Source: Zygnema circumcarinatum SAG 698-1b
Lineage: Eukaryota; Plantae; Zygnematophyceae
Length of the DNA stretch: 64,000 bases
Assembly (NCBI GenBank): GCA_037447605.1
Contig: CM074805.1
Span: 3,257,361 to 3,321,360 of the forward strand
Direction: 5' to 3'
In this document: piece by piece, positions 34,675 through 53,420 of the stretch
Layout: the number at the start of each line of letters is the position of its first letter
Position numbering within the stretch: position 1 is the first letter of the stretch
Translations under genes and position numbers: made by a program
Notes under the pieces: model-generated
Seen by the model: only the letters and a program-made list of their open reading frames with translations
Told to the model about the DNA's origin: nothing
The model's database searches: none

Positions 34675-37600
34675 CTACGGTCTTCCCAACTCCCCTTCGG
34701 CAGAACGCCCCAAAGATTCTGAGAGTCTCTCCGCAGTACCGGAAGTGCTGTGAATTTCTGATCCCCACCCCACCAGCAACCGTGCCGCTTCAGCAGTTGC
34801 CTCTTCCTCGACAACCGCTTCCAATGCCGCATCAACTAAGTTCAAATCGAAATTCCTCACAACCTTCCTCGTTCCAGCACCTCCATTGCAGGGACGCTCT
34901 TTGCCCTCTCCCGACCTGTGGCCGTGTTCTCCAGCTTCCCTAACATCACCAATGGACTTGCTCTTGCATTCCTCCCTAACCCTGACTGCTACACCGCTCT
35001 TCGCTTTCTGCCCTTTTTCAGCCTTCCCCCCCTCACTCTCCTCCTCCGCCCTCCACTGTTGCTCTTTACCCAGCAGCTTCATCTGCTTTTTTGGATGTAT
35101 GGACGCCCTGGCCTTGCCCTTGTCTGACCAGTCCGCCGCCATTCTGCCTCCTGCATCATCAGCGCCACACGCCGGCAAGGGCGCGTCAGCGCAAGCATCG
35201 GACTTTGACTTCACTTGTGCCGCCCCCCTCAGTCCAGACGCGTTCTTCTCCACTGGGGTGCCTTTCGAAGTCACATTGATTGCAGCTCTCTCCCTGTTTG
35301 CACTATTGCAGTTAACTAGTTGCATGATTTTAAGGGCTTTTGCACCACGACCCCCCACCACTTGAGAGCTAAAGCTTTTCCCTGTTTCCTCCTGCCTGAC
35401 CCTCTTCCCAGCAGCAGCACTTGTCGCTCGTTTAAGCCCCGTTTTCACTATCTTGTTGTCGCGCTTTGTATCCACTATTTCTTTAACTGCCTGCACAGAT
35501 TTCCTTCTGCTGCTATTTCCAAGGAGTTCAGCAGAGCTCCCATTTTTTCCTGACACGGTCTGTCCAGCCTTAGTCAAGGTCGCATCTGTCATCTCTGATA
35601 CTGAAATCCTCGCTCTTTTTTTCACTTTAGCCAGATAACTCACCTTCCTGTGAATACCTTCAGCAACACTTCCGGTTTTATCCGCCAAACCTCCGCGTTG
35701 CCCCCCACACTCTTCACTCATCCCCTTCAAGCTTTCGGGTTTACACCCTCCTGATTGCAAGTGCATTGCACCCTCCTCAACAAATTTTCCGAGCTCACTC
35801 TTCTGCCTGCTCTCACGTTTCGCTCCTCTCCGCTTAGACTTCATTCTGCCCACTCTCCTGTCTCTGTCATCCCCATCCCCTTGTTGAGCTCTCTGTTTCA
35901 GCTTTGTTCGACTGTTGCAGGACCTCCCGGCATCCTTTTTGCGCTGTTGTGCCTCCTCGGAGCACAGTGCCCATGGCCCACTCTGCTTGTCCACTTTAGC
36001 CACCAACTCCAATACAGCCAACTCTTCAGCCCAATAAAAGTCACCCTTCTGAAAGCTCCCTCGTCTCCTTCGCTTGGGAGCTGGATCAGTTTGAACAATC
36101 GTATCAAGGCAATCGCCTATTCTTCCAGCTCTTTCTGCCTTCTCGCCATCTGCACCTGCTGCATACTCAGGCCGAAGATCACTTTCTTTTCCAACCATGC
36201 AAGAGCTCTCTTGCCTGCCTCTCACCTGCAGAAACAGTGGTATGCTCTCACTGTCTATGGGAAACATCTCAGACGTTGCCTGTCCTGCAGAAATCCCGCA
36301 ACGATGCCCTTCAAGAGCTTGTTCTTGAACTCCAGAAACTGAATTATGACTGAAAAGTCTGCTCCCATCTTCTGCTGCCGTTGTAAGCAGCATATGTTCT
36401 AAAGAAGCGCTGCACGGCTGAGCAAAGCCGAGCAGGGAGAGAGGGCTTCCATGCTCTCCACCCCCGAGTGTGCCCGGCTCGAGGGTGCTCTCTCTTCTTG
36501 AGATGCAGCCATGGGCGAGAGAGGTGGCCAGCAGTGCACGTTGAAACTCGCCCTCCGGAAAAGGAGGAATTTGAACTTTATCAACTAAGGCGCTGTCCTG
36601 CTGCAGGTGATGCAAACAGTACCTGCTCATCAGAACTCCCCCACCACAGAAATAAATCCAAAAGTCAGTGGAACCGAAGGGCGTGAGTAGGGCGAGCAAA
36701 AGACGGCCAAGGCAAGAGGGAGAATGAGGGAAAAAAATAGGAGAAGGAGAAGACACAGGAGGCATTAGAGGACAACGAATTATCAGGAAGCATAAATGCT
36801 GCCAGTACTTTGATGCTGAAGCCTACAGCTTGCACAAGAGATTGTGCTCGCTTTAACTCAGTGAAAACAGAAGGCAAAGAGACCGACTGTGATGGCAAGC
36901 ACAGAGCAGAGAGTCCATAAAGCATCTGGACAATGACAGACAGTGCGACTCCAGTGAATGCAGAGATTTGACAGCAGCTTCTGCAGCGAAGGGCCACTGC
37001 ACATCTATGGCGTTGGCTGACAAGCACAGCCAAAAGACAAGGTACAATATGTCCTTGCTGTGTTACTCTCAAAGTAATATCCTCTCCCCGTGCACTCCGG
37101 CCATCTCCATCAGTTTTGCAGCAGTAAAACCCGTATTCGATGACTATACCTTGGCATTGGAAGCTCTTTGGACACAGGCATTTGGCACTGCTGTCCACCC
37201 GCCAATTGGCTCCACCCCTCGCAGGCCGCATAGGGCGCACTGACGTCCTCCAGAATGTGCCACATGCACATGGAACAGCCTGCAACGGCTAGCTGGGTGC
37301 ATGCGCCCTTGGCTGCACATGTGCGCATTTTATCCCCACCTGATGAGGTACTGCATTGATTGACGACATCCCTAAGGAAAGGATATGGCTGAATCACCTT
37401 CCCATTTCTTAAGTCCAGTTCCACAGCCCGGTTCATTGGCCGTCCAAAGGGCATCATTTTGGAGCTATCGGCAGCACGTGCTGAACCTTCTCCAGGGTTC
37501 GTTTCGTCTATCTTTGCACCAGGCTCAGTTAGAATCTCCTCCTCAGCTTGAGAATTCGGCACAACGTGAGTCTGCTTCCTTTTAGGATTCCCCTTCCTCC

Positions 37601-40600
37601 TGTGACCTGCACTTCTTAGGCTTTCACTAGAAGGCCCACAGCCCTTACTCCCAGCCTCGCTTCCACACGCAGCTTGTTCACAATCCATATCTGTCGCCTT
37701 TCGTTTGCACTCTATGGCATCGTCCGGTTCACTCGTGCTCCCTCCGAACACACTGCTTTTCTCATGATCACTTCCGACAGAACAATGACCACCAGCACTT
37801 CCATTCATTCCCCGCTCTATTTTCAATTCCTTCACAACTTCAGGCAACTCACTGACCTCACTATCGTGGCCAGAGGGGTCCGCTCTCGCATGCTCCACTA
37901 TAGTTTCTGAACCTCCCCCAACAGTTTCTCCACTTGACCTCTTTAGTTCAACAACCGTTTCGGGGCATTCCGTGACACTCGCACTCACATCCCCATGCCC
38001 TTCCTGATGACTATTTCTCAGCTCCTGATTCCGCTCTTCATCTTCCAAAGACGTCATCCTCCGTTCACCTGCTTCAAGCACCTTTTCCTCAACTTCAGCA
38101 TCCGTGACCGCACTCAGTCCTACACTATGCTGGGTTTTTTTGTCCTCGACGGTTTCTGGAAAACGGTGGTCAGGCTCCTCCACTGGAGGCGATTCATGTC
38201 CTAGCGAATCTCCATCATCCAGCCTCCCCTCTCTTTCTACAGTGTGCATTAACACGCCATGCTCCACAGCTGAGTCATCAGCCATGCTCACTTTCAGTTC
38301 TACAGGCACTTCAACAATAGTTCCCCTCTCTCCATTGAATGCATCGTGCATAGAAGTTCGCTCAATGCAATCGCCTGGCAGCTCTACGCTTTCAACCCTC
38401 ACATCATGCACTTCTGACGCAGAAGCACAGGCAGCTTCAGGCACCCTTTCCATCCTTCTTTCGATTTCCACGGCAAAGGCGACCTCCAGACTTGTCGCTA
38501 TGACTTTCAGGCCATCGGATCCTCCATCCAAAGGACCTGCTCTCAGGAAAGTGGCGTCTGGCGCCAATACTGTAATCTCAATGTCCACAACCTCCATGTT
38601 GCTGTTTCCAGCTTCCTGGGAACAGTTCATTGTCGTATCGTCTGACTCTACATGCACATCTAGCGACAGTTTCTGCTCCGTTTGCTCATTTTCGGTGAAT
38701 GCAGAGACGGGAGTGAATGCAGAGACGGGAGTGAATGCACAGACTTCATCAGTTACTGGCTGCATCATCCCTGAGAGAAGTTTTTCCCGATTTTCTTCTT
38801 GCTGCTGTACAATTAATAGTTGACTATTATAGCCGTAGGGAGCGTTTGGGAGGCAAGCTCCTCCAGCATCCTCAACCTCCTCTGTTGGTGAGGCTTCAGG
38901 TTTCCTGAACTCCGCACTTGCTAAGTTATCTACCATATCCCCCTCTGCAGCAATTCTCTCCATCGGCACATTCTGCGACCTATCCTCTCCTAAACTCACT
39001 TGCGACCCCTCGGACCCAATTGTTCCATAAACTTCGGCCAGTCGTCTGTCATTGTCCTCCATGGGCACCTCTGCTACGGCTATGCCTCCTCCTTCCTCTT
39101 CCAAAGTAGTCCCTTGTCCACTATCATCCTCTGGCAGTAAGCGGCCTCCATCTGGAGAGCAGTCTTCAGCCAGCATGCCTCCTTCTATCCCAGCTTCCAC
39201 CTCACCTTCCTGTACAGAGGGTTCCCCACTCATTCTGGACCCGTCCTCAACAGTCAGTTTTTCATCCAAGCAACAAATCTCATCTTTCTCTTGGCCTTTT
39301 TCTGTTCTCTTCTCCTGTTCTGCAACTTGTCCTATTTGTGCAGAGCATACTTCACTTCCCTCAAGGTTGCTACCAGCCAGACTACTCCCCTCACACCCTT
39401 GCAGCTCTTTTGCAGGCATGCCATCATTATCTACAACTGCTTCCGGGCTATGATCTCCCCAAGTTGTCTCAGGTACGTCGTCCGTTTGATCGTCAAATTG
39501 CGACATTGTGTGAAGTCTCATTCGCCTTCCAAGCCTATGCTTGCATGGTGGCCTCCCCCTTCGCCTAACAATTTGGTTCTGCCCCCTGGGGGGCCCCACA
39601 ATGTCAGACATATGTCGGAACTTCCGAGCTCCCTGAAGCTCTCCATGATCTCTAAGTACCTGCGGATAGCACAGCAAGACCTTCATGTCATCAAGCAGCA
39701 GGCATCTGTTGATCACCGCATGTGGCCACGCAGGACTTCTGTCTCTATCTGACGATTTTTCGAACCTCATTGGTTTATGGACGGGCCCCATGGAACGTGT
39801 AGATCGACTAGTTGATAAAGCTTCTCCTGAAGCGCGTTTCCTCTGAACTGCTCCTCCAGCGTTCAAATCGCTGCCAGGAGCCGCCGCCAACTTTTGAGAT
39901 CTTCTGAATGCCTTTTCTGAACGAGTAGCGGCTCCTTTCCCAGCTGTTGCCTTAGAAGAGGCACCCTCTGACCTCTTAAAGCAATCTGCTCCTTGATCTG
40001 CTGGCGAAACAACGACAACATTCGAAGAAAAATTACCAAGAGAACTAAGTGGTGGATTGTGCTCCACTACTATATTAGCGTCGGCTTCTCCAACTTCTTT
40101 AACTGCAAGCTTTCTCTTCTTCCTGTGTATGTCTCCAATGCTGTTCTTACTGATTTTAACTCCAAGAAAGCCCTCCGTTTGTACACTCTGAGAAGCAAGA
40201 TCTTTCACAGGGTCCATGCCGGTCTCAAACGCGTTCCTCTCGCCTGCAGGCTGTCGTTTTTGCGGCCTCAGCCTCCCCACATTCAGGCATCCTCGGCTAC
40301 TTTGCAGGAAAGCCTTCCTCCCGCTCCCGTCACATTCCTGCAGTTCTTCTAGATGCCGCTCAGATGAAATCGTGCCTTCCACAGAATCTGCAGAATACAT
40401 GTCCGTTGCATAATGTACTGGGCTTCGAGCGCAAGTATAACTTTCGTCAAGAAGATTTGACACTCCTCCACAAGTCTCCTTTATAACCCTTTCAATGCCC
40501 TCCTTAAGTACGCTATCTCCTAAGTCAACCACTTTGCGAGGCCTCCCACGTCTTCTTTTAATCCACGTTCCCTCGGCCAGTGACAAGGCAAAGAGCTCTA

Positions 40601-42650
40601 ATACTTCACGTTTCGTAGCATTTCCTACCGTCCTCCTCTTATACAACTTCGCCTGCTTGAATGCCAACTGCGCAGCTTTGGAAGCAGAATCCCTCTTTGC
40701 ACGCTGCTGCAAGCTCCCCGGGCCGGTCCAACTGACGAGCTGCGCTAGTTCCCTTAAGCCCCTTGCTGTCCCTCTCCTGCTTGTCATGGGCTCCTTGTGA
40801 GACGCTCCAATTCTCTGCCCCCCTCCAGAATCTCCATTAGCCTCAGCATGTTCCTGGTCACCTTGTGACAACACCTCCCCCGACGCCTGAAGGCCACTCT
40901 TCTTACAGCCAGAACCTTTTTGGAGCTTCACTCCCTTTCGTGACCTCACAAATTCCATCTTCCTAAGCATTTCGACCTTCTTCCGAGACCTCAAACTGCA
41001 TTGTTCATATCCTCTGTCATGTCGATGCTCATCGGCTGCCCCACCCTTTGACTCGTCTGCAGGTCCGGCATTAACCCCTCTTTTCGGTTTCGCCTTTCTT
41101 CGACCCACAAGCAGAAATCTGCGAGGTCTCTTCCACCTAGCCTTGCTGCCGCTGTCCATAGCACTGTCTTTTGCAGGTGCCACGTCTTCTGACTCTTTGA
41201 AAAGCTCCTCTGCGAACGGAGTCTTCACGCGAATTTCCATTTCAGAGGACATATTTGGCAGATTGTTAAGCATCCCATCATCTTGACGGTGGCAATCAAT
41301 TCCACCACAATCAACAACTTCACTTGCCTGAGAAATTCCTCCCACACCCTCCTGAAGCTTAGGGAGTTTTTCACGAATGTCAGCGCCTTCATCAGCCATG
41401 GGAACCACATCAATTGCAGGTCCAGAAATCCATCGCGGACTCCCCCTCCCCAGTGTCCTAGACGAGGTTTGCGGTTCCTTAGGAGCAACTATCCGTTCCT
41501 GTACAGCTAGCTCCTGTTTGCTAGGGTCCTCAGCAGTATGCAATTTTCCGTCACCACTCTGTACACAAAAGAGCCTATCGACTCGCGCGCCAGGCGAAGC
41601 GCTTTGGCCGGCTCTGTTTCGTGCATCTGAAATCTGCCCCGTGGCCTCCGGCGGACCTGCGATTTCCTCCCCACAGTTTTCCTTCCCTATATCTGTACCA
41701 GTCTTGTTGAGTAGTCTTGCCAAGACAGCACCTCTAGAACGCAAAATCTGATAGTACGATTGCATAGGCCCCGCAGATTCGCAAGGTAGACACCACGTCG
41801 GAATCTGGCCCCTTGTTCTCGCTGACCCTTCCGTTTCAAACACAGACACAGCCCTGGACAGATTACTCTGTAACAAGGCCGCTACTGCGGAGGACTGAAC
41901 CAGCGAATGTGATGCAGCATTACTGCAATCTACGGAAGCGCAAGATTCAGGGAGTGCATCGTCATTTCCTGTGCTCTCTGGAGTCAATCTTTCAGTAAAC
42001 ATTATACGATCAGCCCTGGGGTCGAGGACTCTCTCTGACTCCAAACCAAAAGATAGAAAAGCCGGTTCAACATACTCCTGAGACTCTGAACGATTAGCAA
42101 CACAGCCTCGCTGTGATGCTCCCCTTTCTTGCAATAACATTTTCCTCCCCACCTGTACAGGCTCATCTTTGTCTATGAAATAATTTGTTCCGTTATTGCA
42201 CTTCCGTCCAGAACGGCGCAACAAGATTGTAGATTTCCTACGTCTTCCGCGAGCTCCTACTTCTCCAGCCTTCATCTCTCTCTCCAATGAGTCTGCAACG
42301 AATCAATGAATCATGAATACAATGAATTAAATCTTGGAAAATGAGTAAGCAGAGGGTCCATGTCCTAGAGCTTCAAGAGCATGTCGTCCACGTTCTGTGC
42401 CAACACAAATAAAGATTCCAATTAACGCTATGCTTGTCTCAAGCAAGCGCATATTTCCAAGGCGAGGCAATGTGGACTTCAAGTAAGTTTTCAAGCGTGT
42501 TCATGCCAGTATAACTAAATGAAGCAGAAGTCAATACAGGCAAGCCTACTGAGTTACTCCACTTCTCGTCCAAAGCCTCCAACGATCCACCACCAGCTAT
42601 AGTCCCTCACCCTGAAGCAAGACTCTGACTCTGATTTCCCCCTCAAGCAT
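34675..42650 (-). CDS. Gene A: ~2,400-aa nuclear protein with two AT-hook-like motifs and a KANSL2/INO80D-type zf-C3Hc3H finger
   Basis: Exons 42650-42611 (a further 5' exon from ATG 43037 is possible), 42292-37150 and 36622-34675 are phase-consistent. Motifs KRRRGRPRK and RRRGRPP. Finger CAAKGACTQL...CMWHILEDVSAPYAAC...CQMPV...PR|YCLHH. An EAR-like FDLNL lies near the C-terminus. Confidence 0.8.
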
Positions 42651-43484: not shown

Positions 43485-44222
43485 CATGGCATGGCATGGC
43501 AGGGCATGGCATGGCATGGCAGGGCATGGCATGGCATGGCAAGGCATGGCATGGCATGGCAAGGCATGGCATGGCATGGCAAGGCATGGCATGGCTGGGC
43601 ATGGCATGGCATGGTAGGGCATGGCATGGCATGGTAGGGCATGGCATGGCAAGGCATGGCATGGCATGGTATGGCATGGTATGGCATGGCATGGCATGGC
43701 AGGGCATGGCATGGCATCGCATGGCATGGCATGGCATGGCATCGCATGGCATGGCATGGCAAGGCATGGCATGGCATGGCATGGCAGGGCATGGCATGGC
43801 ATGGCAAGGCATGGCATGGCATGGCAAGGCATGGCATGGCATGGCATGGCATGGCATGGCATGGCATGGGGCATGGCATGGCATGGTAGGGCATGGCATG
43901 GCAAGGCATGGCATGGCATCGCATGGCATGGCATCGCATGGCATGGCATGGCATGGCATCGCATGGCATGGCATGGCATGGCAAGGCATGGCATGGCATG
44001 GCAAGGCATGGCATGGCATGGCAAGGCATGGGGCATGGCATGGCATGGCAAGGCATGGCATGGCATGGCAAGGCATGGCATGGCATGGCAAGGCATGGCA
44101 TGGCATGGCATGGCATCGCATGGCATGGCATGGCATGGCAGGGCATGGCATGGCAAGGCATGGCATGGCTGGGCATGGCATGGCATGGCATCGCATGGCA
44201 TGGCATCGCATGGCATGGCATG
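43485..44222. repeat. (CATGG)n pentamer satellite, ~148 units with GGCAA/GGCAG/TCGCA variants
   Basis: Read directly. It is the source of the PCHAM/MAWHG pseudo-ORFs. Confidence 0.95.
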
Positions 44223-45427
44223 TGCTGGAGGAAGGCCTGGCCTGGCCTTCGAGCTCTCGCGTGACCCGTTCCTCGTGGTTCTCTAAGTTATGTTTGTCCA
44301 TGTAACATTTGATGGCCTCGCCCTCGTGAATTCAATGAAATTTCCCTCCCATTTTCCTTCTTCTGTTAGTCGCCCTTTCCTTCGTACAATCTCATGACAC
44401 CAACATCGTGGGATCAAAACAATTCATTTTTCCCTCCTTCATGCATTGCGAGCCATGCGATAGCCGTCCGAAGGGCACAAGAGCAATTTGACCGGCAATC
44501 CTCTCGCCCCAATGCTAACCACGACTTCGTATAGCAGATAGGAATCCAAACCTATCGCTCACAAAGGAAGCTGACTTCAAACAAAAAATATTTATATATA
44601 CATATGTAAAACCACCAAGGGCTCTGTTTCTAAGAACCCGTTTTTATCGAAAACTGTTTCATTCTGTCGTTTGCGAGGAAAAGCGACACACCACCACTTA
44701 CAAGGCCTTGGAACTTTTCACTTTTTAACCTATTTTTCAGCATATGCAAATGTCAACTTTTTCCCTGCACAAATAGGACAAACACAAACCAGGCAGACTA
44801 AAAACGAAGCCAGTTTACACGGCTCATTGTGAACGACGTCACGAGACTTTCCTGTACATGTCTAGTTTCCATAACAGGCACGAAAACGTATTTATACAGA
44901 GCTGGGACACTTGGGGTGCTTCAATCGCCGAGCTGCGGCTCTCTTCTGACCCTCCTATGGGACACAACCCCCCTAACTCCCTCATCCTGACACCCTCTCG
45001 TCATCGTTTTATTCCATACAGCAGACGAGGTTAGGCCGCAGCCAATCAGAGCAGTCCTCCTCGAGCACTGCCTGCTGTGCTGGGAAGCAGGCACGAGGTC
45101 ATCAGAGCGCATGAGATGACCATTGCCTGACTCGCAGCGCTATTCTGTTCTGTTCCCCAGTATCTTGTCCTTTCAGACTCTTCCGAGGAATTTGTGCATC
45201 CCAACTTGAGATGTTTGTGAGCAGCTTGCATGTTCCGCCTCTCTCGGTATCTCATTCATCACCCTCCCAATGTTTTTCATTCAGCTATCCCGCAAAACTC
45301 TTGTCACCATCTACATCGAATTCTTTTTCCGTAAGATCACATTTACCTCCTCTCACAGGCCATCTAGCCTATCTGCCCTCTCAGCTCGTCCTTCACTGGT
45401 CCACATCGTACCTTCTGTCTGCACAAA

Positions 45428-48400
45428 CTACAACATCTTTCTGTTCAACGAGAACAAGCGGTCACGGCTTTTATCACCAATTTCAGTGATGGAACCCTTA
45501 CAAGACCTGCAGCAAGATACAACTTCCATTCGAATCGTACCCAGCTCCCGCAACACTGGTAACCTTTGTGCTGTCTCTATGTTTGCGATGTCCTCATGGC
45601 CGCAAGATGATATAAGTTCCACATAGAACACGTTCAGGGTTTCCTCAGTTTCCCCACTCCTGTCCCATTCCATGATTTCACCTGCGCAGCTTTCACCGAC
45701 CCTCTCCCTCTAACAATGCCTTGTTCCTTCTTTCAGTGCCCCGTCCTCCTCCTAGGACTCTACACCTGCTTGACACGTGTCAGAATTTGCATGTGCAAAA
45801 TTTGTCTTTGCCTGCGGACCCCACTGTTCTCGCGCTGCGCAGTCGTATACCTTCGCGGCAGCCATTGCGGTAGGGAAGCTTCCGAGCTGAATCTTCCAGC
45901 CAGACTCACTGCAAGGAATTTCAGCAACAAACTTTCCGGAGTCTGTTCTGCGAATTCCAACGTAAGTGACATCACTGCACATCGCAGTCTGAGCTGGGAA
46001 TGTCGAGATTTTGGATTCAGCTGGAGGGAAAGGGAGTTGCTCAAGACCAGCATCGCTCGGATAGTCTTTGCTGACCCCTGTTTGAAAAAGAGAGGAACGT
46101 GCTGATTTGCCTGAATCGCCACATTGTTGTGCACGCTTGAGGCCAGTGACTTCCCTTCGACTTCCACACTTCCCCACTACTTGCAATGCTGTAACTTTTG
46201 ATATAGAGCGCTTCATGCTTTTGGAAAACTCATCAGCGTTAAGCCCTTCATACTCCGTGACTTCCTCACAATGACCAACGTTCCCTAGCAATGAGAGCCT
46301 TTTGCTTGTAAGAGGCTGAGCATGCTTGCCCCCTCCACGATTCAGAATGAATCCTTCAGTTTTTGGGACACACATTGCGGGTTCAGGGTCTTTTGGGCTT
46401 GAGCCGAAACCACGTTTGAGCCTAGAAAGTCGCCGGTTTCGGACCTCTGTGAAAGGATGATCTTGGTCACTGTCCCGGTGATTACCGGTCTTATTAGTGG
46501 GTTCTTCATCAGGAGGAGGCATATAAGAGGTGATAAGAGGTGGGTGCCAAGATAGTGGAATGATTTCATGCGCAAGAGTGGCTGCTGCAACAGCCTTAGA
46601 AAATTCCCCGCCCTGGAGAAGACCTCTCAAGTGATTGGCAGTTCCCAGGGTTGCAGCTTCCGGCCGATGCAATAGACAATACCTACAGAAACAACCCAAT
46701 TGTTCTGTCAATGATCATGAGACATTTAAAAAAGGGCGCCTGTTTCTACATCAGAGTACATTCGCAGCAGGCAAAGGGTATCGCACTCAAAGTAAACACA
46801 AATGCGTCATGAAGTGGTGTACCTGGGATTGGAGTTATTCACCCAAACGGGCATTGAACAGTTGTACCGTTGCGGCTGCTTCTGCTTCGCCTCTGAATTA
46901 CCCCCACCTCCATATTGGCATCGATAGTATGGAGAAAAGGCATCCTCCAGAATGTGCCGAATGCAGAACCTGAACCCTGTCATAGAGAGCTGAGTGCATC
47001 CTCCTTGGGATCGACAGGGAGATATTTGTAGATCTGACGGGTATGCCATCTCGTCACATTTCCCTTTCTTCGCCATGGCTTCTTCATCATCCTCACCAGA
47101 CCATTCCTCTAACTCTCCCATTTTCCTGTGTCGAGCTTCCTCTAAACACTGTTTATCCGCTATCTTCATCGCTCCATCCTCTGCGTTCAAAGTGGTGATG
47201 CGCAAATGCGTAGACGAGACGACTTCAATCAACAAAACAGTGCCTGTCACAACTTCATTTGCCTTAGCGAATGCATGCCAACCACTTCGGAGACGCACAT
47301 TCTGGTTTTTGGATCCGTATGATTCCCACGCCATCCTCCACTTGCGGCCGCGTTCATCTTCCACCGACAAAGGTCCATAACTTCCAGGAAGAAACTGCTT
47401 CATGAAAGGCACGGGCAGATCCTGACCCATGCCAAAATGCAAGACTTCAAATCAGACCGCCGCTAGGAGAGCATGACATGATACCTAAAAAAACGACATG
47501 ATTCTATTGGGTTTATACAGCCAACATGGTTTGAGAGCAAGCAAGCTACGAATAGGGCTGATATGTACGGTAGTAGCTTCATCGATCCACAACGGTACAA
47601 GGTTTAGGAGGAAGTTGTGAGACAGAATAACATACCATGTATTTCAACAAAGTCTGATACTTTGGTACTCTTTTGGCACAGGATGGCCAAAAACCGCGCT
47701 TGGCTTTTAGCATTTGTAGAATGTAAACAAGCTCTTTGTGGTGGTAAATGCCCGAGTCAATCAGAGGTACATATAGACGGTCTATAGAGACCTCATTGTT
47801 GACAACGGCCATTGTCAAATCCTCGTCCTTTTCACCGACAAACACGTATTTTTTTCTTTGTGTTGCACGAGATAATTTGACCAATTCAAATGGTATTGCT
47901 GATGGCTGCATCCTGCAGGACCAAGGTACGCAGTCATAACACATTCTTGACCTCCTTTCCCTCGATCTCATTTCACTATCCTATCGTGAGAGCTAATCAA
48001 GAACAGCAGATACTGAAGCTGTGACCGGTGCCGCTTCAAGTGGATATTACTCCTTCTACAACGGAACTCCAATAGATGGCAATTGTGCTGGTCTGAAAAC
48101 ATACATTCCGGTCTAGAGGACTTGTCATTCATACTCAGGGTTGTCCTGAAATCTAAGTGTTTTGACAAAGACGGTAGCACATAATCAAGGCCTGCGCTAA
48201 GTCTAAATGCACAACTCTGAACTGTAAAAGCTAAAAGACCAAGTACAAGAGCTGTAGCAGCAAAACCCAAGTGAGCACATGGAAGAGGCGTTAATGCAAC
48301 TTCGTTGAACCCTACCGTTGTGAACGAATACCGGGTCTGACTCCGTCACCAGATTCTTCTTTTGTTGGCTCTGATTCCATGGCAATCTCTGTCCCAACCA

Positions 48401-51400
48401 TTCCATTTCCAGAGATATGCTTTCCGCTTTCCCCATCTGCAACACCAGTCCCTTTAGAAAAGGTCTCACACTGTACTAATCCCCTTTCAACCGACTCCTC
48501 TTGACGTCCAGTGCGTGCCATCTTCACATTCAAATCCTCAAAACCCACCTCCCTTTCTGAAATTGTGCACTGTTCTCCCCCTGCAGATTGCGCTCGCATC
48601 TGCGCAAATCCAATGTTTGTTGCCTCCTCAGCTCCTCCAGAAGCCGCTTCCTTCGTCTCTGCTTCCTTGAGGGAAGCAAGTCTCTGGAAATCCTCTTTTT
48701 CAGTGTTCATTATGATGTCCTCAACGATAGGCTCTGTCACCTCGCCTGAAAGTCCATTCTCTACCATGTTTTGACCAGCTCCAACATCACTCACCTTCGC
48801 AATTTTGACATCGGATGCGGCCTGACGCTGAAAACCACCTTTTCCCAAGGTCGCTTCAGTTCTTACTGGGACACATCGCTTTAGCATTTCTTCCGACTGT
48901 CTGCAGTTTGCCATCTCCTCGCCATCTCCAAAATCAAATTTCTCCGTCACAACCTCCTTAAGAGAGGTTTGCCTTTGGACTACCGCCATTTCAGTGTTAG
49001 CCAAGTTCGCATCAACTTCAACAAACGTTTTTTCCATCCCAGCTTCCATACACGTTGCGCCCTCTTGAGAAACCTCTTGTTGAAAGGCTGTCTCCGTTCC
49101 CTCTGATAACAAGTTTTTGCTTATCTCGTCTCGACTTCCACCATTCCTCATTATTTCAAGGCCAACATACTCTAATGACTCCCAACGTGCCGCACGTTCA
49201 CACCTTTCTTCAGAGTTCCTCAGATATGATGTTTGTCCCACTTCAGCAGAAGGTGTTTCCGCAGAAACACGTCCCACTTCAGCAAAAGGTGTTTCCGCAG
49301 AAACACATTCCATTGCTACCCCTTCTCTACCGCCTGCTCGCTGTTCAATACTCAGATCGCCATTTTCTACCTGGAAGTTCTGACCACCTCTACTTTCAAT
49401 ATACGACTCCAACTGAGCCCAAGGAGCGCCACTCTGCATGCGGAAGACAACAACTTTGAAAACTTGAACTTGAAACTTGAAACTTGAACTTGAAAGCTTT
49501 GCCCCATTCAGTAGTTCGAAGAGGAGAACATCCCCTGCAAGCAGTCCTTTCGCCATCGCAAAGTCCAACCAGCCGCGCTGCAGGTGTGGATTCCTCCCTG
49601 AACTTTCAAACTTCCAAAAGGCATCCCAACGCTTCCCCGCATCATCTTCCAGGGCCACTTCTCCCGCATTTCCCTTCACGTACTTGTGGAAAAATTGCGC
49701 CGGCAAAGCCTGGAGAATACCCCCCCGGATGAAGAAGAAAAGAATGAGATGATCCAGTTAATTGTACGGTTAAGAAACCCTTCTGTGGATGCGAACCCTA
49801 TTGAAAGATACAGTCGCATAACCCAGGGATTGTATTCAGACCAACAAGTATTCATGACGATTCTACGGGTTTCTCATCCAAAGCACTCTTGATCCAGTTC
49901 ATTGCCCCAATTCGCAACTTCAAAAAAGCGTCTCCTATCAAAGAAAGGCAGCCAGGTTGTGAAGTACATTTTTGGTTCTAGTTACAGGAGCTATGTGACA
50001 CCTGTCACCAAATATGAACAAAATGTTTCTAAAGACCCTGACGTAACACATGAATGCCCAAAGCAACTCTACCCCCCACTTTCTGTCACCGTCCTAAAGC
50101 CTTAAAATATTCCCCTAATCCAGTTTCTTGTGGAATGGAAATCTTGAAGTCAAAGTCAAATGTACTCAAGGATGCCCGATAGAACTATCGCTTAAAAAGT
50201 AACTAACGTTGCTGGCATTAAAATATCTGGCACTGATATTCTTTCTATACCATCCTTCTTCCCCTACTGTGCTCACCATAATCACCAACCAAAAGCGACT
50301 AGAGCAAAGGTGACATTACCATGCCTTTGTTTGTCTTCAAGAAATCTGTTGGAGTCATCACCCTTGCGAATGAAGGGTGACGAGTCCATAACCCCTCAAT
50401 CGCCGTCATTAGCGATTCAGCTCCATCCCGTGCATTGGGGTTGTGCGTAGTGCATGGTTGATGCCGGACACTCCCATTCTCAATCCTACTATTGAAAATC
50501 ACTCGCCCTTTGTCAGATTGAGACGTTTGTTCCTCCTTCCCATGTAAATCCACCACCTGTAGCGGACTACTGCTTGACGGGTTCTGAACTCCCGCTGTCT
50601 GCAAAGTATTCCCCTGTGAGCATTCGAAATTGCAAAGGGGGAGGCCTGCGACTTTACACCGTTTACTTTCCTTCCTGTCTCCAGTTGTAAGAGCATCATC
50701 CGATGCCACCTGTCCAGACCCACCATCACTGCTTGAGCCTGCGACACGTGGCCTACCTGCAGGAATTCCAAAACCAGGCATCCCGAGACTTCGAAAACGA
50801 CGTTTTTTGGCTTTTCCTCGAGCATTTGCTGCAGCCGGTTCGGAAGGACCCGCTTGGAGGGGAACATCTTGGGATTGTGTTAACTCATTCGGAACACACT
50901 GCGCAAAACGATCGTGCATGCCATCAAGAAAGGAGAAGAAACATGCCGCGTGAAATGAAAACTACCAATTGGATCTAAATAACGCACTCCTATATTTGTT
51001 AACACTTGCATGATACAGCATCTGAACTCAGCACGTTCCCTCTATTCCGTGTGCCTTGTGTTATTCTCACTGCTATCACATTTCTTTCTGAACAAATCCA
51101 CTTGCGTATTTGCTGCCCAAATAGCATGTCAAGGCGTGTGACGGGTTGTGGAACACTGACTTGACAGGGCACCTCACCTTGCTTTTGTCAAGCGTTGCAA
51201 TTTGCATACCCCTCTCCATTTGCGCACGAACGGGAAAGGTAACTCTCACTTTTTCCTTTCCAATGACCTCAAAAAGAAGAACCTCTCCTTGCTCAATCTT
51301 ATGCGCCTGCGCGAATTCATTCCAACCCTGGCAGATACTAAACTGTCTCCTCCCAGTAACCCCATGGGATTTGACCAAATATTCTCGCATCAGATAACTA

Positions 51401-52652
51401 GCTGGCCATTTTCGCCCCGATTCATCTTCCAAGGTCATCCTCCCTTTTTCTTTTCGCCAATACTTGGGAATAAACCACAGAGGGAAAACCTGCAAGGAAA
51501 ACAAGCGCAAGCAAGAACACAGTACGCAGTAAGCAACACGAAGCACGCTGCAAGAAACGCTCGCCTCACTCCGTTCCCCGTGTGTTGCAAACCACCCACG
51601 TGTCACTAAGCTGTAGCTGCAAGTACACTACATAAAACATAAAGGAGTTCGAAAAGGGACTACAAAAAAGCAAAACATTGGGTTGTGCCTTGCGGAAGTG
51701 AGCTGTTTCCATGGCTAGATTCATCCTAGCAAATCGAGTCAAGCTAGGAAATTACGAGCAAAAGCACACAGTCCTTATCTGTGTAACATTCGTCCCCCTT
51801 CCTATTTTGAAATGGCTCATCTAGCACAAACCATTGTTCAGTTGATCTACTCTTCATGGAAAAAAGTTGGTCATGAAGTTTAAAAGAGCTTGCACCTCCA
51901 CCTAGGGAGAAATGTTTCACGGGCTGATGCGTACATAAAGAGCTTAACAGCTTCGAGTTTTTGCACGCATGAATTGTGTGTTTGACATCACGAAATGAAA
52001 ATATTATACAGAATACTTGCACATGTATGTGAGTGAAGTACATGCAAGGAGTACAATTGTTACGATGTGAACAGCTATACTACACTATTGAAGAAAATAT
52101 GTAATTCTGATAATCCTCGTTATTTTTTGATAAGTTTCCTTATAACAGTTAAACAGTTAAGTTGCAGAAGATGGTCAAATGTGACAGTGTGGATAGATGG
52201 GTAAAAATGGGTAAATGCCAACCTTTCAGTTAAAATTAGAAAGCACGATTAAAGAATGGAAGGTCAGACATAGATGAGCTCAATTTCGTTCAAGAATGTT
52301 AACTTAGACATGCTGGATGAAAAATGTGTGGCACGACCAAGTGGACAGTGCTCGGTAATGCTCAAGGTAGGAGTGACAGGGAGCCATCCTGAACAGGGTC
52401 TATAGGTAGTTACATTGTACTAATGTGAAACAAGAGCAACACTCATTCGGGTGTCGAATTGGACGGAGTAGTAGGAGTGTCTCTTACCACGGGGACTTGA
52501 GGTCGATGGAGAAGCGACGTCCTTGGAATTGTCCTAGCAAGAGAGGGGTATTCCGTCTTCACGCCTTTAAGAACTTCAGCAATATACCTTTTGTCATCAA
52601 TTTTCTTAGCACAAATGTACGGCTCAAAGGTGCTGCCTTGGTCTTCCTCCAT
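45428..52652 (-). CDS. Gene B: ~1,500-aa protein with three B3 domains, a zf-C3Hc3H finger and a C-terminal AP2-like domain
   Basis: Phase-consistent exons: 52652-52488, 51489-51178, 50898-50320, 49709-48316, 47912-47636, 47421-46823, 46682-45766, 45681-45428. B3 cores: LEDESGRKW...QGWNEFAQAHKIEQGEVLLFE; LEDDAGKRW...RGWLDFAMAKGLLAGDVLLFE; VEDERGRKW...SGWHAFAKANEVVTGTVLLIE. Finger FCIRHILEDAFSPYYRC...CSMPV...PR|YCLLH. AP2 YVGIRR...GKFVAEI...LGSFPTAMAAAKVYDCAA...AKTNF. The 3' end is less certain. Confidence 0.85.
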
Positions 52653-53039
52653 GCAGCCTATTATCTGCGGAGAAGTTCAGCTTAAATGGGATTTGAAACA
52701 AAGGAATGCACTCCCAGTCCTACAACTCTGACAGAGGAAGTAACATGCCTCATTAATATAGCAGCTGCAGCACACTACACTTGACCAAGTAATGACAGAC
52801 TCAAAACAGCAAATTTCCCCTCGAACTTAAGGTGCTTTCCACTCTACTGGAATTGAAAGGACCAGTCTGCTTAACCTAAGCAGGCCCTTTACTCCCTCTG
52901 CCACATTTTGCGACATCTTTCACCAAACAACCACGACTGCGAGACTCCCTTCCGATATGTACGCACGGGTACTGGAAAGCACTACTGCACTTGAAATCAC
53001 TGGAAAGCACTCCTGCACTCGCTATTCCTCCTCTTCGTC

Positions 53040-53420
53040 TCGTGGCGGGAAGAGCTGGAGAGGCCCCGAGAGAGCAGGAAGGAGAGGGAGAGGGAGAACG
53101 CGGGAGGGCGAGGGAGAGCGGCAGGCCCGGGCCGGGGCCGGGGCGGTGGCGCGCAGGAGGGCACGCCCCCGCCCCCGTTCACACGGAGGCGACGGAGCGG
53201 GAACCGGCGACCATGGGATGGATGGATGGATGGATGCCATGGGATGGGATTGGCTGTGAGGGACCGGAGGGAGGGATGTGCCGTGTGACCATGTCGCCAT
53301 GTCCATGCGCTTCTCGTCGAGGCCATGAGGCCATGGGCATGAGGCCGATGGTTTGTTTGGTTTGCAGTGCGGGCGGTACTGTGTACTGTGCTCTTGGTTG
53401 GCGAGGCGGCAAAGTACGAA
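53040..53420 (-). promoter_or_regulatory. GC island with CATG/(GGAT)n cluster, putative promoter of gene B
   Basis: GC-rich; ccatgg(gatg)n and repeated CATG at 53211-53345; lies upstream of the first B3 exon. Confidence 0.5.

Follow-up and report, generated by a model that had tools for sequence, protein, structure and literature searches.

We find that the minus strand of a 64,000-nucleotide stretch of the Zygnema circumcarinatum SAG 698-1b genome (assembly GCA_037447605.1, contig CM074805.1, positions 3,257,361 to 3,321,360; hereafter the window, to whose first letter all coordinates refer) carries a single expressed, spliced gene whose product joins three B3 domains, one zf-C3Hc3H zinc finger of the INO80D/KANSL2 type and one divergent AP2/ERF domain, in that order. 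The protein belongs to a streptophyte family already in print, that of Taxus chinensis TcA3Bz1, and is very probably a nuclear DNA-binding protein. Both the combination of domains and their order have been described before, and the Zygnema gene is a new member of the published family. A preliminary description of this locus had known of no protein with this combination, or with a B3 domain ahead of an AP2, and had proposed a new transcription-factor class. The first statement falls to relatives in Mesotaenium, Marchantia, ferns, a lycophyte and Taxus; the second falls to publication of the architecture in 2019 as TcA3Bz1 (BMC Plant Biol 2019;19:413, PMC6781369), an outcome for which the description itself had allowed.

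The coding sequence (45752..52652, minus strand) runs from an ATG at 52652 to a TAG at 45754-45752 and comprises seven exons, with 4257 nucleotides (nt) including the stop and 1418 encoded amino acids. Translated from stop to stop, the minus strand across 45000-53200 breaks into successive open segments, and their joints were taken from RNA contigs, enumeration of the GT/AG pairs that keep the frame having given far too many combinations. Logan RNA contigs from four runs in four studies were aligned to 45701-51700, a region present in seven of the ten runs of the organism. Identical joints, five in number, occur in all four runs, each reading CT..AC on the plus strand and hence GT..AG on the minus; a loose contig end at 51490 resumes at 52489, again in all four, and defines the first intron. 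With the cuts shifted to canonical dinucleotides, exons 1 to 7 lie at 52652-52488, 51489-51178, 50898-50320, 49709-48316, 47912-47636, 47421-46823 and 46682-45752 (all minus strand). All six introns are GT..AG, and the open reading frame stays open through every junction, over 1418 codons. Every joint is found on one contig of 5.8-6.9 kb in three runs (X1, X3 and X5), and in run X2 the transcript is spread over three contigs whose ends still show the joints. The in-phase joining of exons into one open reading frame, as first proposed, holds at all junctions of the RNA contigs; the eight exons and roughly 1,500 amino acids proposed with it become seven coding exons and 1418 residues. Its junctions appear as spliced contigs in four runs, with six introns in place of the seven junctions expected.

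The difference lies at the 3' end. Contigs of all four runs are free of joints from 46679 down to 45701 and hence include the TAG, and the region 45428..45751 (minus strand), from which a last exon at 45709-45431 had been predicted, is non-coding and forms part of the 3' untranslated region. Because the contigs continue for 1064 nt (X1) to 2044 nt (X5) past 45701, this untranslated region measures at least about 1.1 kb. Introns 4 and 2 are retained in some contigs (47884-48327 and 50874-51207), whose word depth of 4.5-9.5 is low beside the 32-84 of the spliced form. Introns 1, 3, 5 and 6 split, respectively, the first, second and third B3 domains and the finger, and with four domains divided in this way the exons cannot be independent genes. 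One minus-strand gene encodes the whole protein.

All three B3 domains score above the Pfam threshold (PF02362, cut-off 30.1 bits), database searches having been run with single exons rather than with the whole 1418-residue protein. The first (B3-1, residues 40-152; 51199..52535, minus strand) is split by the 998-nt intron 52487-51490 (E value 2.5e-11), the second (B3-2, residues 339-438; 49452..50361, minus) by intron 50319-49710 (4.2e-10), and the third, finger-adjacent domain (B3-3, residues 899-999; 47152..47668, minus) by intron 47635-47422 (1.7e-9), confirming the three B3 domains of the preliminary description. A family-specific hidden Markov model (HMM) scores them at 61, 60 and 80 bits. 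Among solved structures, B3-2 matches the B3 domains of TEM1, VRN1 and RAV1 (E values 6e-5 to 7e-4), and the matches of both B3-2 and B3-3 to those of TEM1 and RAV1 are weak; B3-1 retrieved no solved B3 domain. Between B3-2 and B3-3 lies a long linker rich in Glu, Gly and Ala (about residues 440-817; 48316..49451, minus) and devoid of detectable domains: its exon gave no Pfam family besides B3, and phmmer gave no match among the relatives. The linkers are long, acidic and of low complexity, with 15% Glu over residues 440-815. A basic run, KKRR at residue 190, could serve as a nuclear localization signal. Of the 92 residues of exon 5 (residues 818-910), the last few begin B3-3; searches of Pfam, BLAST and Atlas matched none of the others, and Mesotaenium has no counterpart to them. 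At 277 nt (47912-47636) the exon is bigger than a minimal B3 leader.

The finger and its tail (46556..47034, minus strand; finger at residues 1044-1114, tail to residue 1151) begin in the same segment as B3-3, where Pfam PF13891 matches at 35.2 bits (E value 1.5e-8, cut-off 27). B3-3 and finger share exon 6, and the finger runs on into the AP2 exon, the phase-2 intron between exons 6 and 7 (46822-46683) cutting within the Arg codon of 'R|YCLLH'. Splicing restores a whole finger (CRSQGGC, FCIRH, RYCLLH) with the complete C3H-C-C3H pattern, as first proposed. It is followed by a motif, G-x-F(S/T)....AA..A(H/N), that all family members share and that reads GEFSKAVAAATLAH in Zygnema. For structural comparison the finger and tail of the Marchantia orthologue were modelled from a 10-sequence alignment, standing in for the Zygnema finger (mean predicted local distance difference test score, pLDDT, 72.5; 79-88 over the first 70 residues). 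Foldseek searches of Swiss-Prot with this model return the N-terminal fingers of KANSL2 and INO80D as best matches (E values 2e-5 to 8e-4), the mouse and human INO80D fingers being 41% identical to it over 69 residues (E value 2e-5); a starfish INO80D-like protein is also matched by sequence, and the signature FCxxHILED..(A/S)PY..C is kept across plants and animals. Judged from this model, the finger is of the KANSL2/INO80D family, to which the preliminary description had rightly assigned it. No zf-C3Hc3H finger was found in solved structures by single sequence or profile, and Foldseek of the Marchantia model against the PDB gave only insignificant matches to MCM10 and SIAH zinc modules.

The AP2/ERF domain (residues 1347-1405; 45794..45970, minus strand) ends 13 residues before the C terminus and corresponds to the family's AP2 repeat R1. 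Pfam detects it at 21.1 bits (E value 3.8e-4), under a gathering cut-off of 33.3, and then only if the final 75 residues are searched by themselves. The same 75-residue stretch matches solved AP2/ERF domains, namely WRI1 (1e-8), ERF096 (1.3e-7) and AtERF1 (1.7e-6 and 2.8e-6), and alignment to AtERF1 (1GCC) preserves the framework YxG...GKF.AEI...LG.F...AA..YD.AA...G..A..NF. The AP2-like domain first proposed is therefore borne out by its matches to solved domains (1e-8 to 2.8e-6) and falls short of the Pfam cut-off. In work by Allen et al. of 1998, the DNA contacts of AtERF1 are said to be R150, R152, W154, E160, R162, R170 and W172. At these positions Zygnema keeps R150 and E160, has Lys for R170, and replaces the remaining four of the seven (R152T, W154S, R162P and W172Q). 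The domain shares 41-44% identity with R1 in the family's land-plant members, in which the canonical contacts are retained (pattern RKRPWG...EIR...RLWLG). Zygnema and Mesotaenium R1 have in common a one-residue insertion, a WK(I/L)xLG pattern and loss of the canonical contacts. By these alignments the AP2 domain is real but divergent. Searching the whole 64-kb window with family proteins (tblastn) revealed no AP2 beyond R1.

Relatives were sought with exon 6, which holds B3-3 and most of the finger, in an exhaustive HMMER search of 1.84 billion representative proteins. There were 116 matches in all, none above 50% identity, so the Zygnema protein itself is absent from the searched library. Most are angiosperm REM-type proteins with multiple B3 domains, and a smaller group has similarity to the finger and AP2 stretch as well. 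The best match is Mesotaenium endlicherianum ME000150S01146, in which Pfam finds B3, zf-C3Hc3H and AP2 in this order, all above threshold. The same three domains, in order and above threshold, occur in Ceratopteris richardii KP509_39G001200, two Adiantum species and Diphasiastrum complanatum O6H91_20G050800; Marchantia polymorpha MARPO_0093s0032 (PTQ32953.1, annotated 'EREBP-like factor') has all three above threshold plus an Agenet domain, and a partial Taxus chinensis protein shows B3 and finger. HMMs made from family sequences give the architectures B3-B3-B3-zf-AP2 in Zygnema, B3-B3-zf-AP2-(AP2)-AP2 in Mesotaenium, B3-zf followed by three to four AP2 in Marchantia, B3-zf-AP2-AP2 in Ceratopteris and Adiantum nelumboides, B3-zf-AP2 in Adiantum capillus-veneris (P0011), and B3-zf followed by four AP2 in Diphasiastrum. 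A Logan genomic contig (SRR22405887, L002:3306-10203) also contains an unannotated member, with a B3 and zf-C3Hc3H exon followed by two AP2-domain exons. A word-based search for further relatives with the Mesotaenium finger-AP2 region returned the query alone, and no angiosperm member was found.

The published account places Taxus TcA3Bz1, Ginkgo Gb_05581 and Marchantia PTQ32953.1 in a new AP2/EREBP subgroup, defined by a single B3, a single zf-C3Hc3H and three AP2 domains, with the B3 N-terminal to the AP2 domains, contrary to RAV (PMC6781369). It also lists two Physcomitrium proteins with the finger and three AP2 domains and no B3, and reports the group missing from angiosperms. The algal members and multi-B3 forms are not in that paper, although the Mesotaenium protein is in public proteomes. 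Literature searches by the Marchantia gene identifier and by citations of TcA3Bz1 gave nothing past the 2019 paper, no functional study and no later use of the name; a full-text search for zf-C3Hc3H together with AP2 found it as the sole paper.

Several characters tie the Zygnema protein to this family. Its B3 domains lie N-terminal to the finger, the finger with its tail motif lies between, and the AP2 is C-terminal. The intron within the finger interrupts the same codon in the same phase in Zygnema (CCC AG|GTACAC...CTGTAG|G TAT TGT) and Marchantia (AAC AG|GTGAAA...TTTCAG|G TAC TGC; phase 2, inside the Arg codon that precedes YCQMH). A second intron lies in both a few residues before the '(F)PV.FMKQF' of the finger-adjacent B3, at a Marchantia position that is approximate (from BLAST) and compared without phase. 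A maximum-likelihood tree of 84 B3 domains (14 family and 70 REM-type, chosen with the family HMM; 102 columns) gathers all 14 family domains in one group apart from the REM-type domains (support 98/80). Within it, Zygnema B3-1 pairs with Mesotaenium B3-1 (100/95) and Zygnema B3-3 with Mesotaenium B3-2 (94/52), both finger-adjacent copies, while Zygnema B3-2 falls at the base of the group. Since B3 domains pair across the two algae, at least one B3 duplication is older than their split. The number of AP2 domains varies in the family (one in Adiantum P0011, two to four in others), and the three of the published definition are not found in Zygnema. Because the finger intron, the tail motif, the B3 grouping and the R1 identity are common to Zygnema and the family, we assign the protein to the TcA3Bz1-type family; on these sequence characters the resemblance points to membership and not convergence.

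Five points weigh against this assignment or against a DNA-binding role. The AP2 domain is below the curated Pfam cut-off with most canonical contacts gone, and may not bind DNA at all. Statements about function anywhere in the family are inferred, our literature search having found no experiment on any member. The sequencing runs carry the label 'RNA?' or '?', and what they provide is assembled contigs, not single molecules. Few columns underlie the B3 tree, and its outgroup consists only of the REM-type domains retrieved by the search, without ARF, RAV or LAV. Finally, the published family has three AP2 domains and one B3, and the Zygnema protein one AP2 and three B3.

The arrangement suggests how such a protein might work. 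B3 underwent internal duplication in the algal lineage, with two copies in Mesotaenium and three in Zygnema, and of the family's AP2 repeats R1 alone remains in the Zygnema protein. Its AP2 keeps the residues that define the fold, and R152T, W154S, R162P and W172Q would weaken or alter contact with DNA. Because these four of the seven contact residues are replaced, DNA targeting would fall chiefly to the three B3 domains, perhaps reading spaced or repeated sites. The finger and its conserved tail helix probably form a further interaction surface, for protein or nucleic acid.

What that surface meets is where the readings part. The preliminary description envisaged a possible sequence-specific recruiter, whose finger would dock an INO80-type or NSL-type complex at sites that the B3 and AP2 domains recognize. 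In its favour, Pfam, Foldseek, the starfish INO80D-like match and the conserved signature make the finger a clear homologue of the N-terminal fingers of INO80D and KANSL2. Against it, no solved structure was found with a zf-C3Hc3H finger, and Pfam labels the domain only 'potential DNA-binding'. To share a domain with subunits of a complex does not imply binding that complex, the tail motif of the family is absent from the animal INO80D match, and the literature search found neither interaction data nor anything that ties KANSL2 or INO80D functionally to this finger. We consider recruitment of this kind unlikely. A broader conjecture, in which the family is an ancient streptophyte regulator that predates land plants, was lost in angiosperms and uses its INO80D/KANSL2-type finger to link sequence-specific recognition of DNA with a complex for chromatin remodelling or acetylation, strikes us as decidedly unlikely; if true, the algal members would show that such a system can run on B3 alone, with AP2 reduced to a single contact-poor repeat.

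The state of the AP2 domain also bears on whether the gene is a decaying or neofunctionalized lineage-specific paralogue that, having lost R2 and R3 as well as the DNA contacts of R1, no longer acts as a transcription factor. The single AP2 in the window, the replacement of four of seven canonical contacts, and the long low-complexity linkers without homology would fit such a history. Against it stand an intact open reading frame of 1418 codons across six introns and a spliced transcript assembled in four studies. The substitutions and the one-residue insertion recur in Mesotaenium R1, which makes this an old state that has been kept, and the Adiantum capillus-veneris member likewise has a single AP2. 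Decay is thus very improbable. An assembly or annotation chimera, in which two neighbouring genes, one REM-like with several B3 domains and the other with finger and AP2, are joined only in assembled contigs, is more improbable still and can be set aside: contigs are not single molecules, one contig over two genes does not prove one transcript, and run X2 has the transcript in three pieces, but all exons sit on single contigs in X1, X3 and X5 with every joint canonical and the frame kept, B3-3 and finger share exon 6 with the finger continuing into the AP2 exon, and orthologues carry the same order in one protein.

A nuclear DNA-binding protein of the TcA3Bz1 family thus remains our preferred reading, and the Zygnema gene is the second algal member of a family so far seen only in sequence. 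Together with Mesotaenium, it shows the B3-finger-AP2 core to be older than land plants, with the finger intron kept since the common ancestor with liverworts. Repeat numbers within the family are fluid, at one to three B3 and one to four AP2 domains, and the Zygnema member is unusual in its count of three B3 with R1 as the single AP2.

Directly downstream lies a tandem neighbour gene (about 34675..42287, minus strand), whose product is very large, of low complexity and marked by two AT-hook-like motifs, KRRRGRPRKV and RRRGRPPCK. It lacks B3 and AP2 domains and has one zf-C3Hc3H finger at 37331-37146 (PF13891, E value 6.1e-8), matched also by the family finger in tblastn. An intron predicted at 37149-36623 (527 nt, GT..AG) interrupts this finger at the same Arg codon and in the same phase as in the B3-finger-AP2 gene, and the same tail motif follows, here GEFQRALLATSLAH. 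These shared features support the two genes as tandem paralogues for the finger module. In Marchantia, no second finger occurs within 10 kb of the family gene. Between the two Zygnema genes lies a (CATGG)n array (43485-44222; about 147 copies, 88% matches), which yields long spurious 'MPCHA' open reading frames in all frames; one RNA contig of the B3-finger-AP2 gene may extend into it.

Among known systems, RAV/TEM proteins likewise place AP2/ERF and B3 in one protein. They differ in having AP2 first, a single B3 and no zinc finger, and the Zygnema protein does not qualify as RAV; its B3-before-AP2 arrangement is the reverse of the RAV order, as the preliminary description had stated. MpRAV was considered as the Marchantia counterpart and rejected, being a separate gene (Mp2g22250) with AP2, B3 and PB1. 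REM proteins such as VRN1 carry tandem B3 domains like the Zygnema protein, and angiosperm REM proteins are the top matches outside the family; they have neither finger nor AP2, and their B3 domains lie outside the family group in the tree, which sets the Zygnema protein apart from REM. Nor does the gene belong with VAL/HSI, proteins that combine B3 with PHD-like and CW zinc fingers, as Pfam found no PHD or CW match in any of its exons. INO80D and KANSL2 have an N-terminal zf-C3Hc3H homologous to the family's finger and no similarity elsewhere; they carry two fingers without B3 or AP2, and are chromatin-complex subunits, not sequence-specific factors. An INO80D/KANSL2 orthologue was accordingly rejected, the Zygnema protein having one finger at residues 1044-1114 of 1418, plus B3 and AP2.

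Nearer at hand, the TcA3Bz1 subgroup shares with the Zygnema protein the order B3, zf-C3Hc3H, AP2. It differs in having one B3 and three or four AP2 domains where Zygnema has three and one, and its Marchantia member has an Agenet domain that the Zygnema protein lacks. Mesotaenium ME000150S01146 (P0001, 1211 residues) differs in having two B3 domains and further AP2 repeats at about residues 935-1011 and 1145-1211, and is about 33-38% identical to the Zygnema protein in the domains and not at all in the linkers; like the Zygnema protein, it sets multiple B3 domains ahead of the finger.

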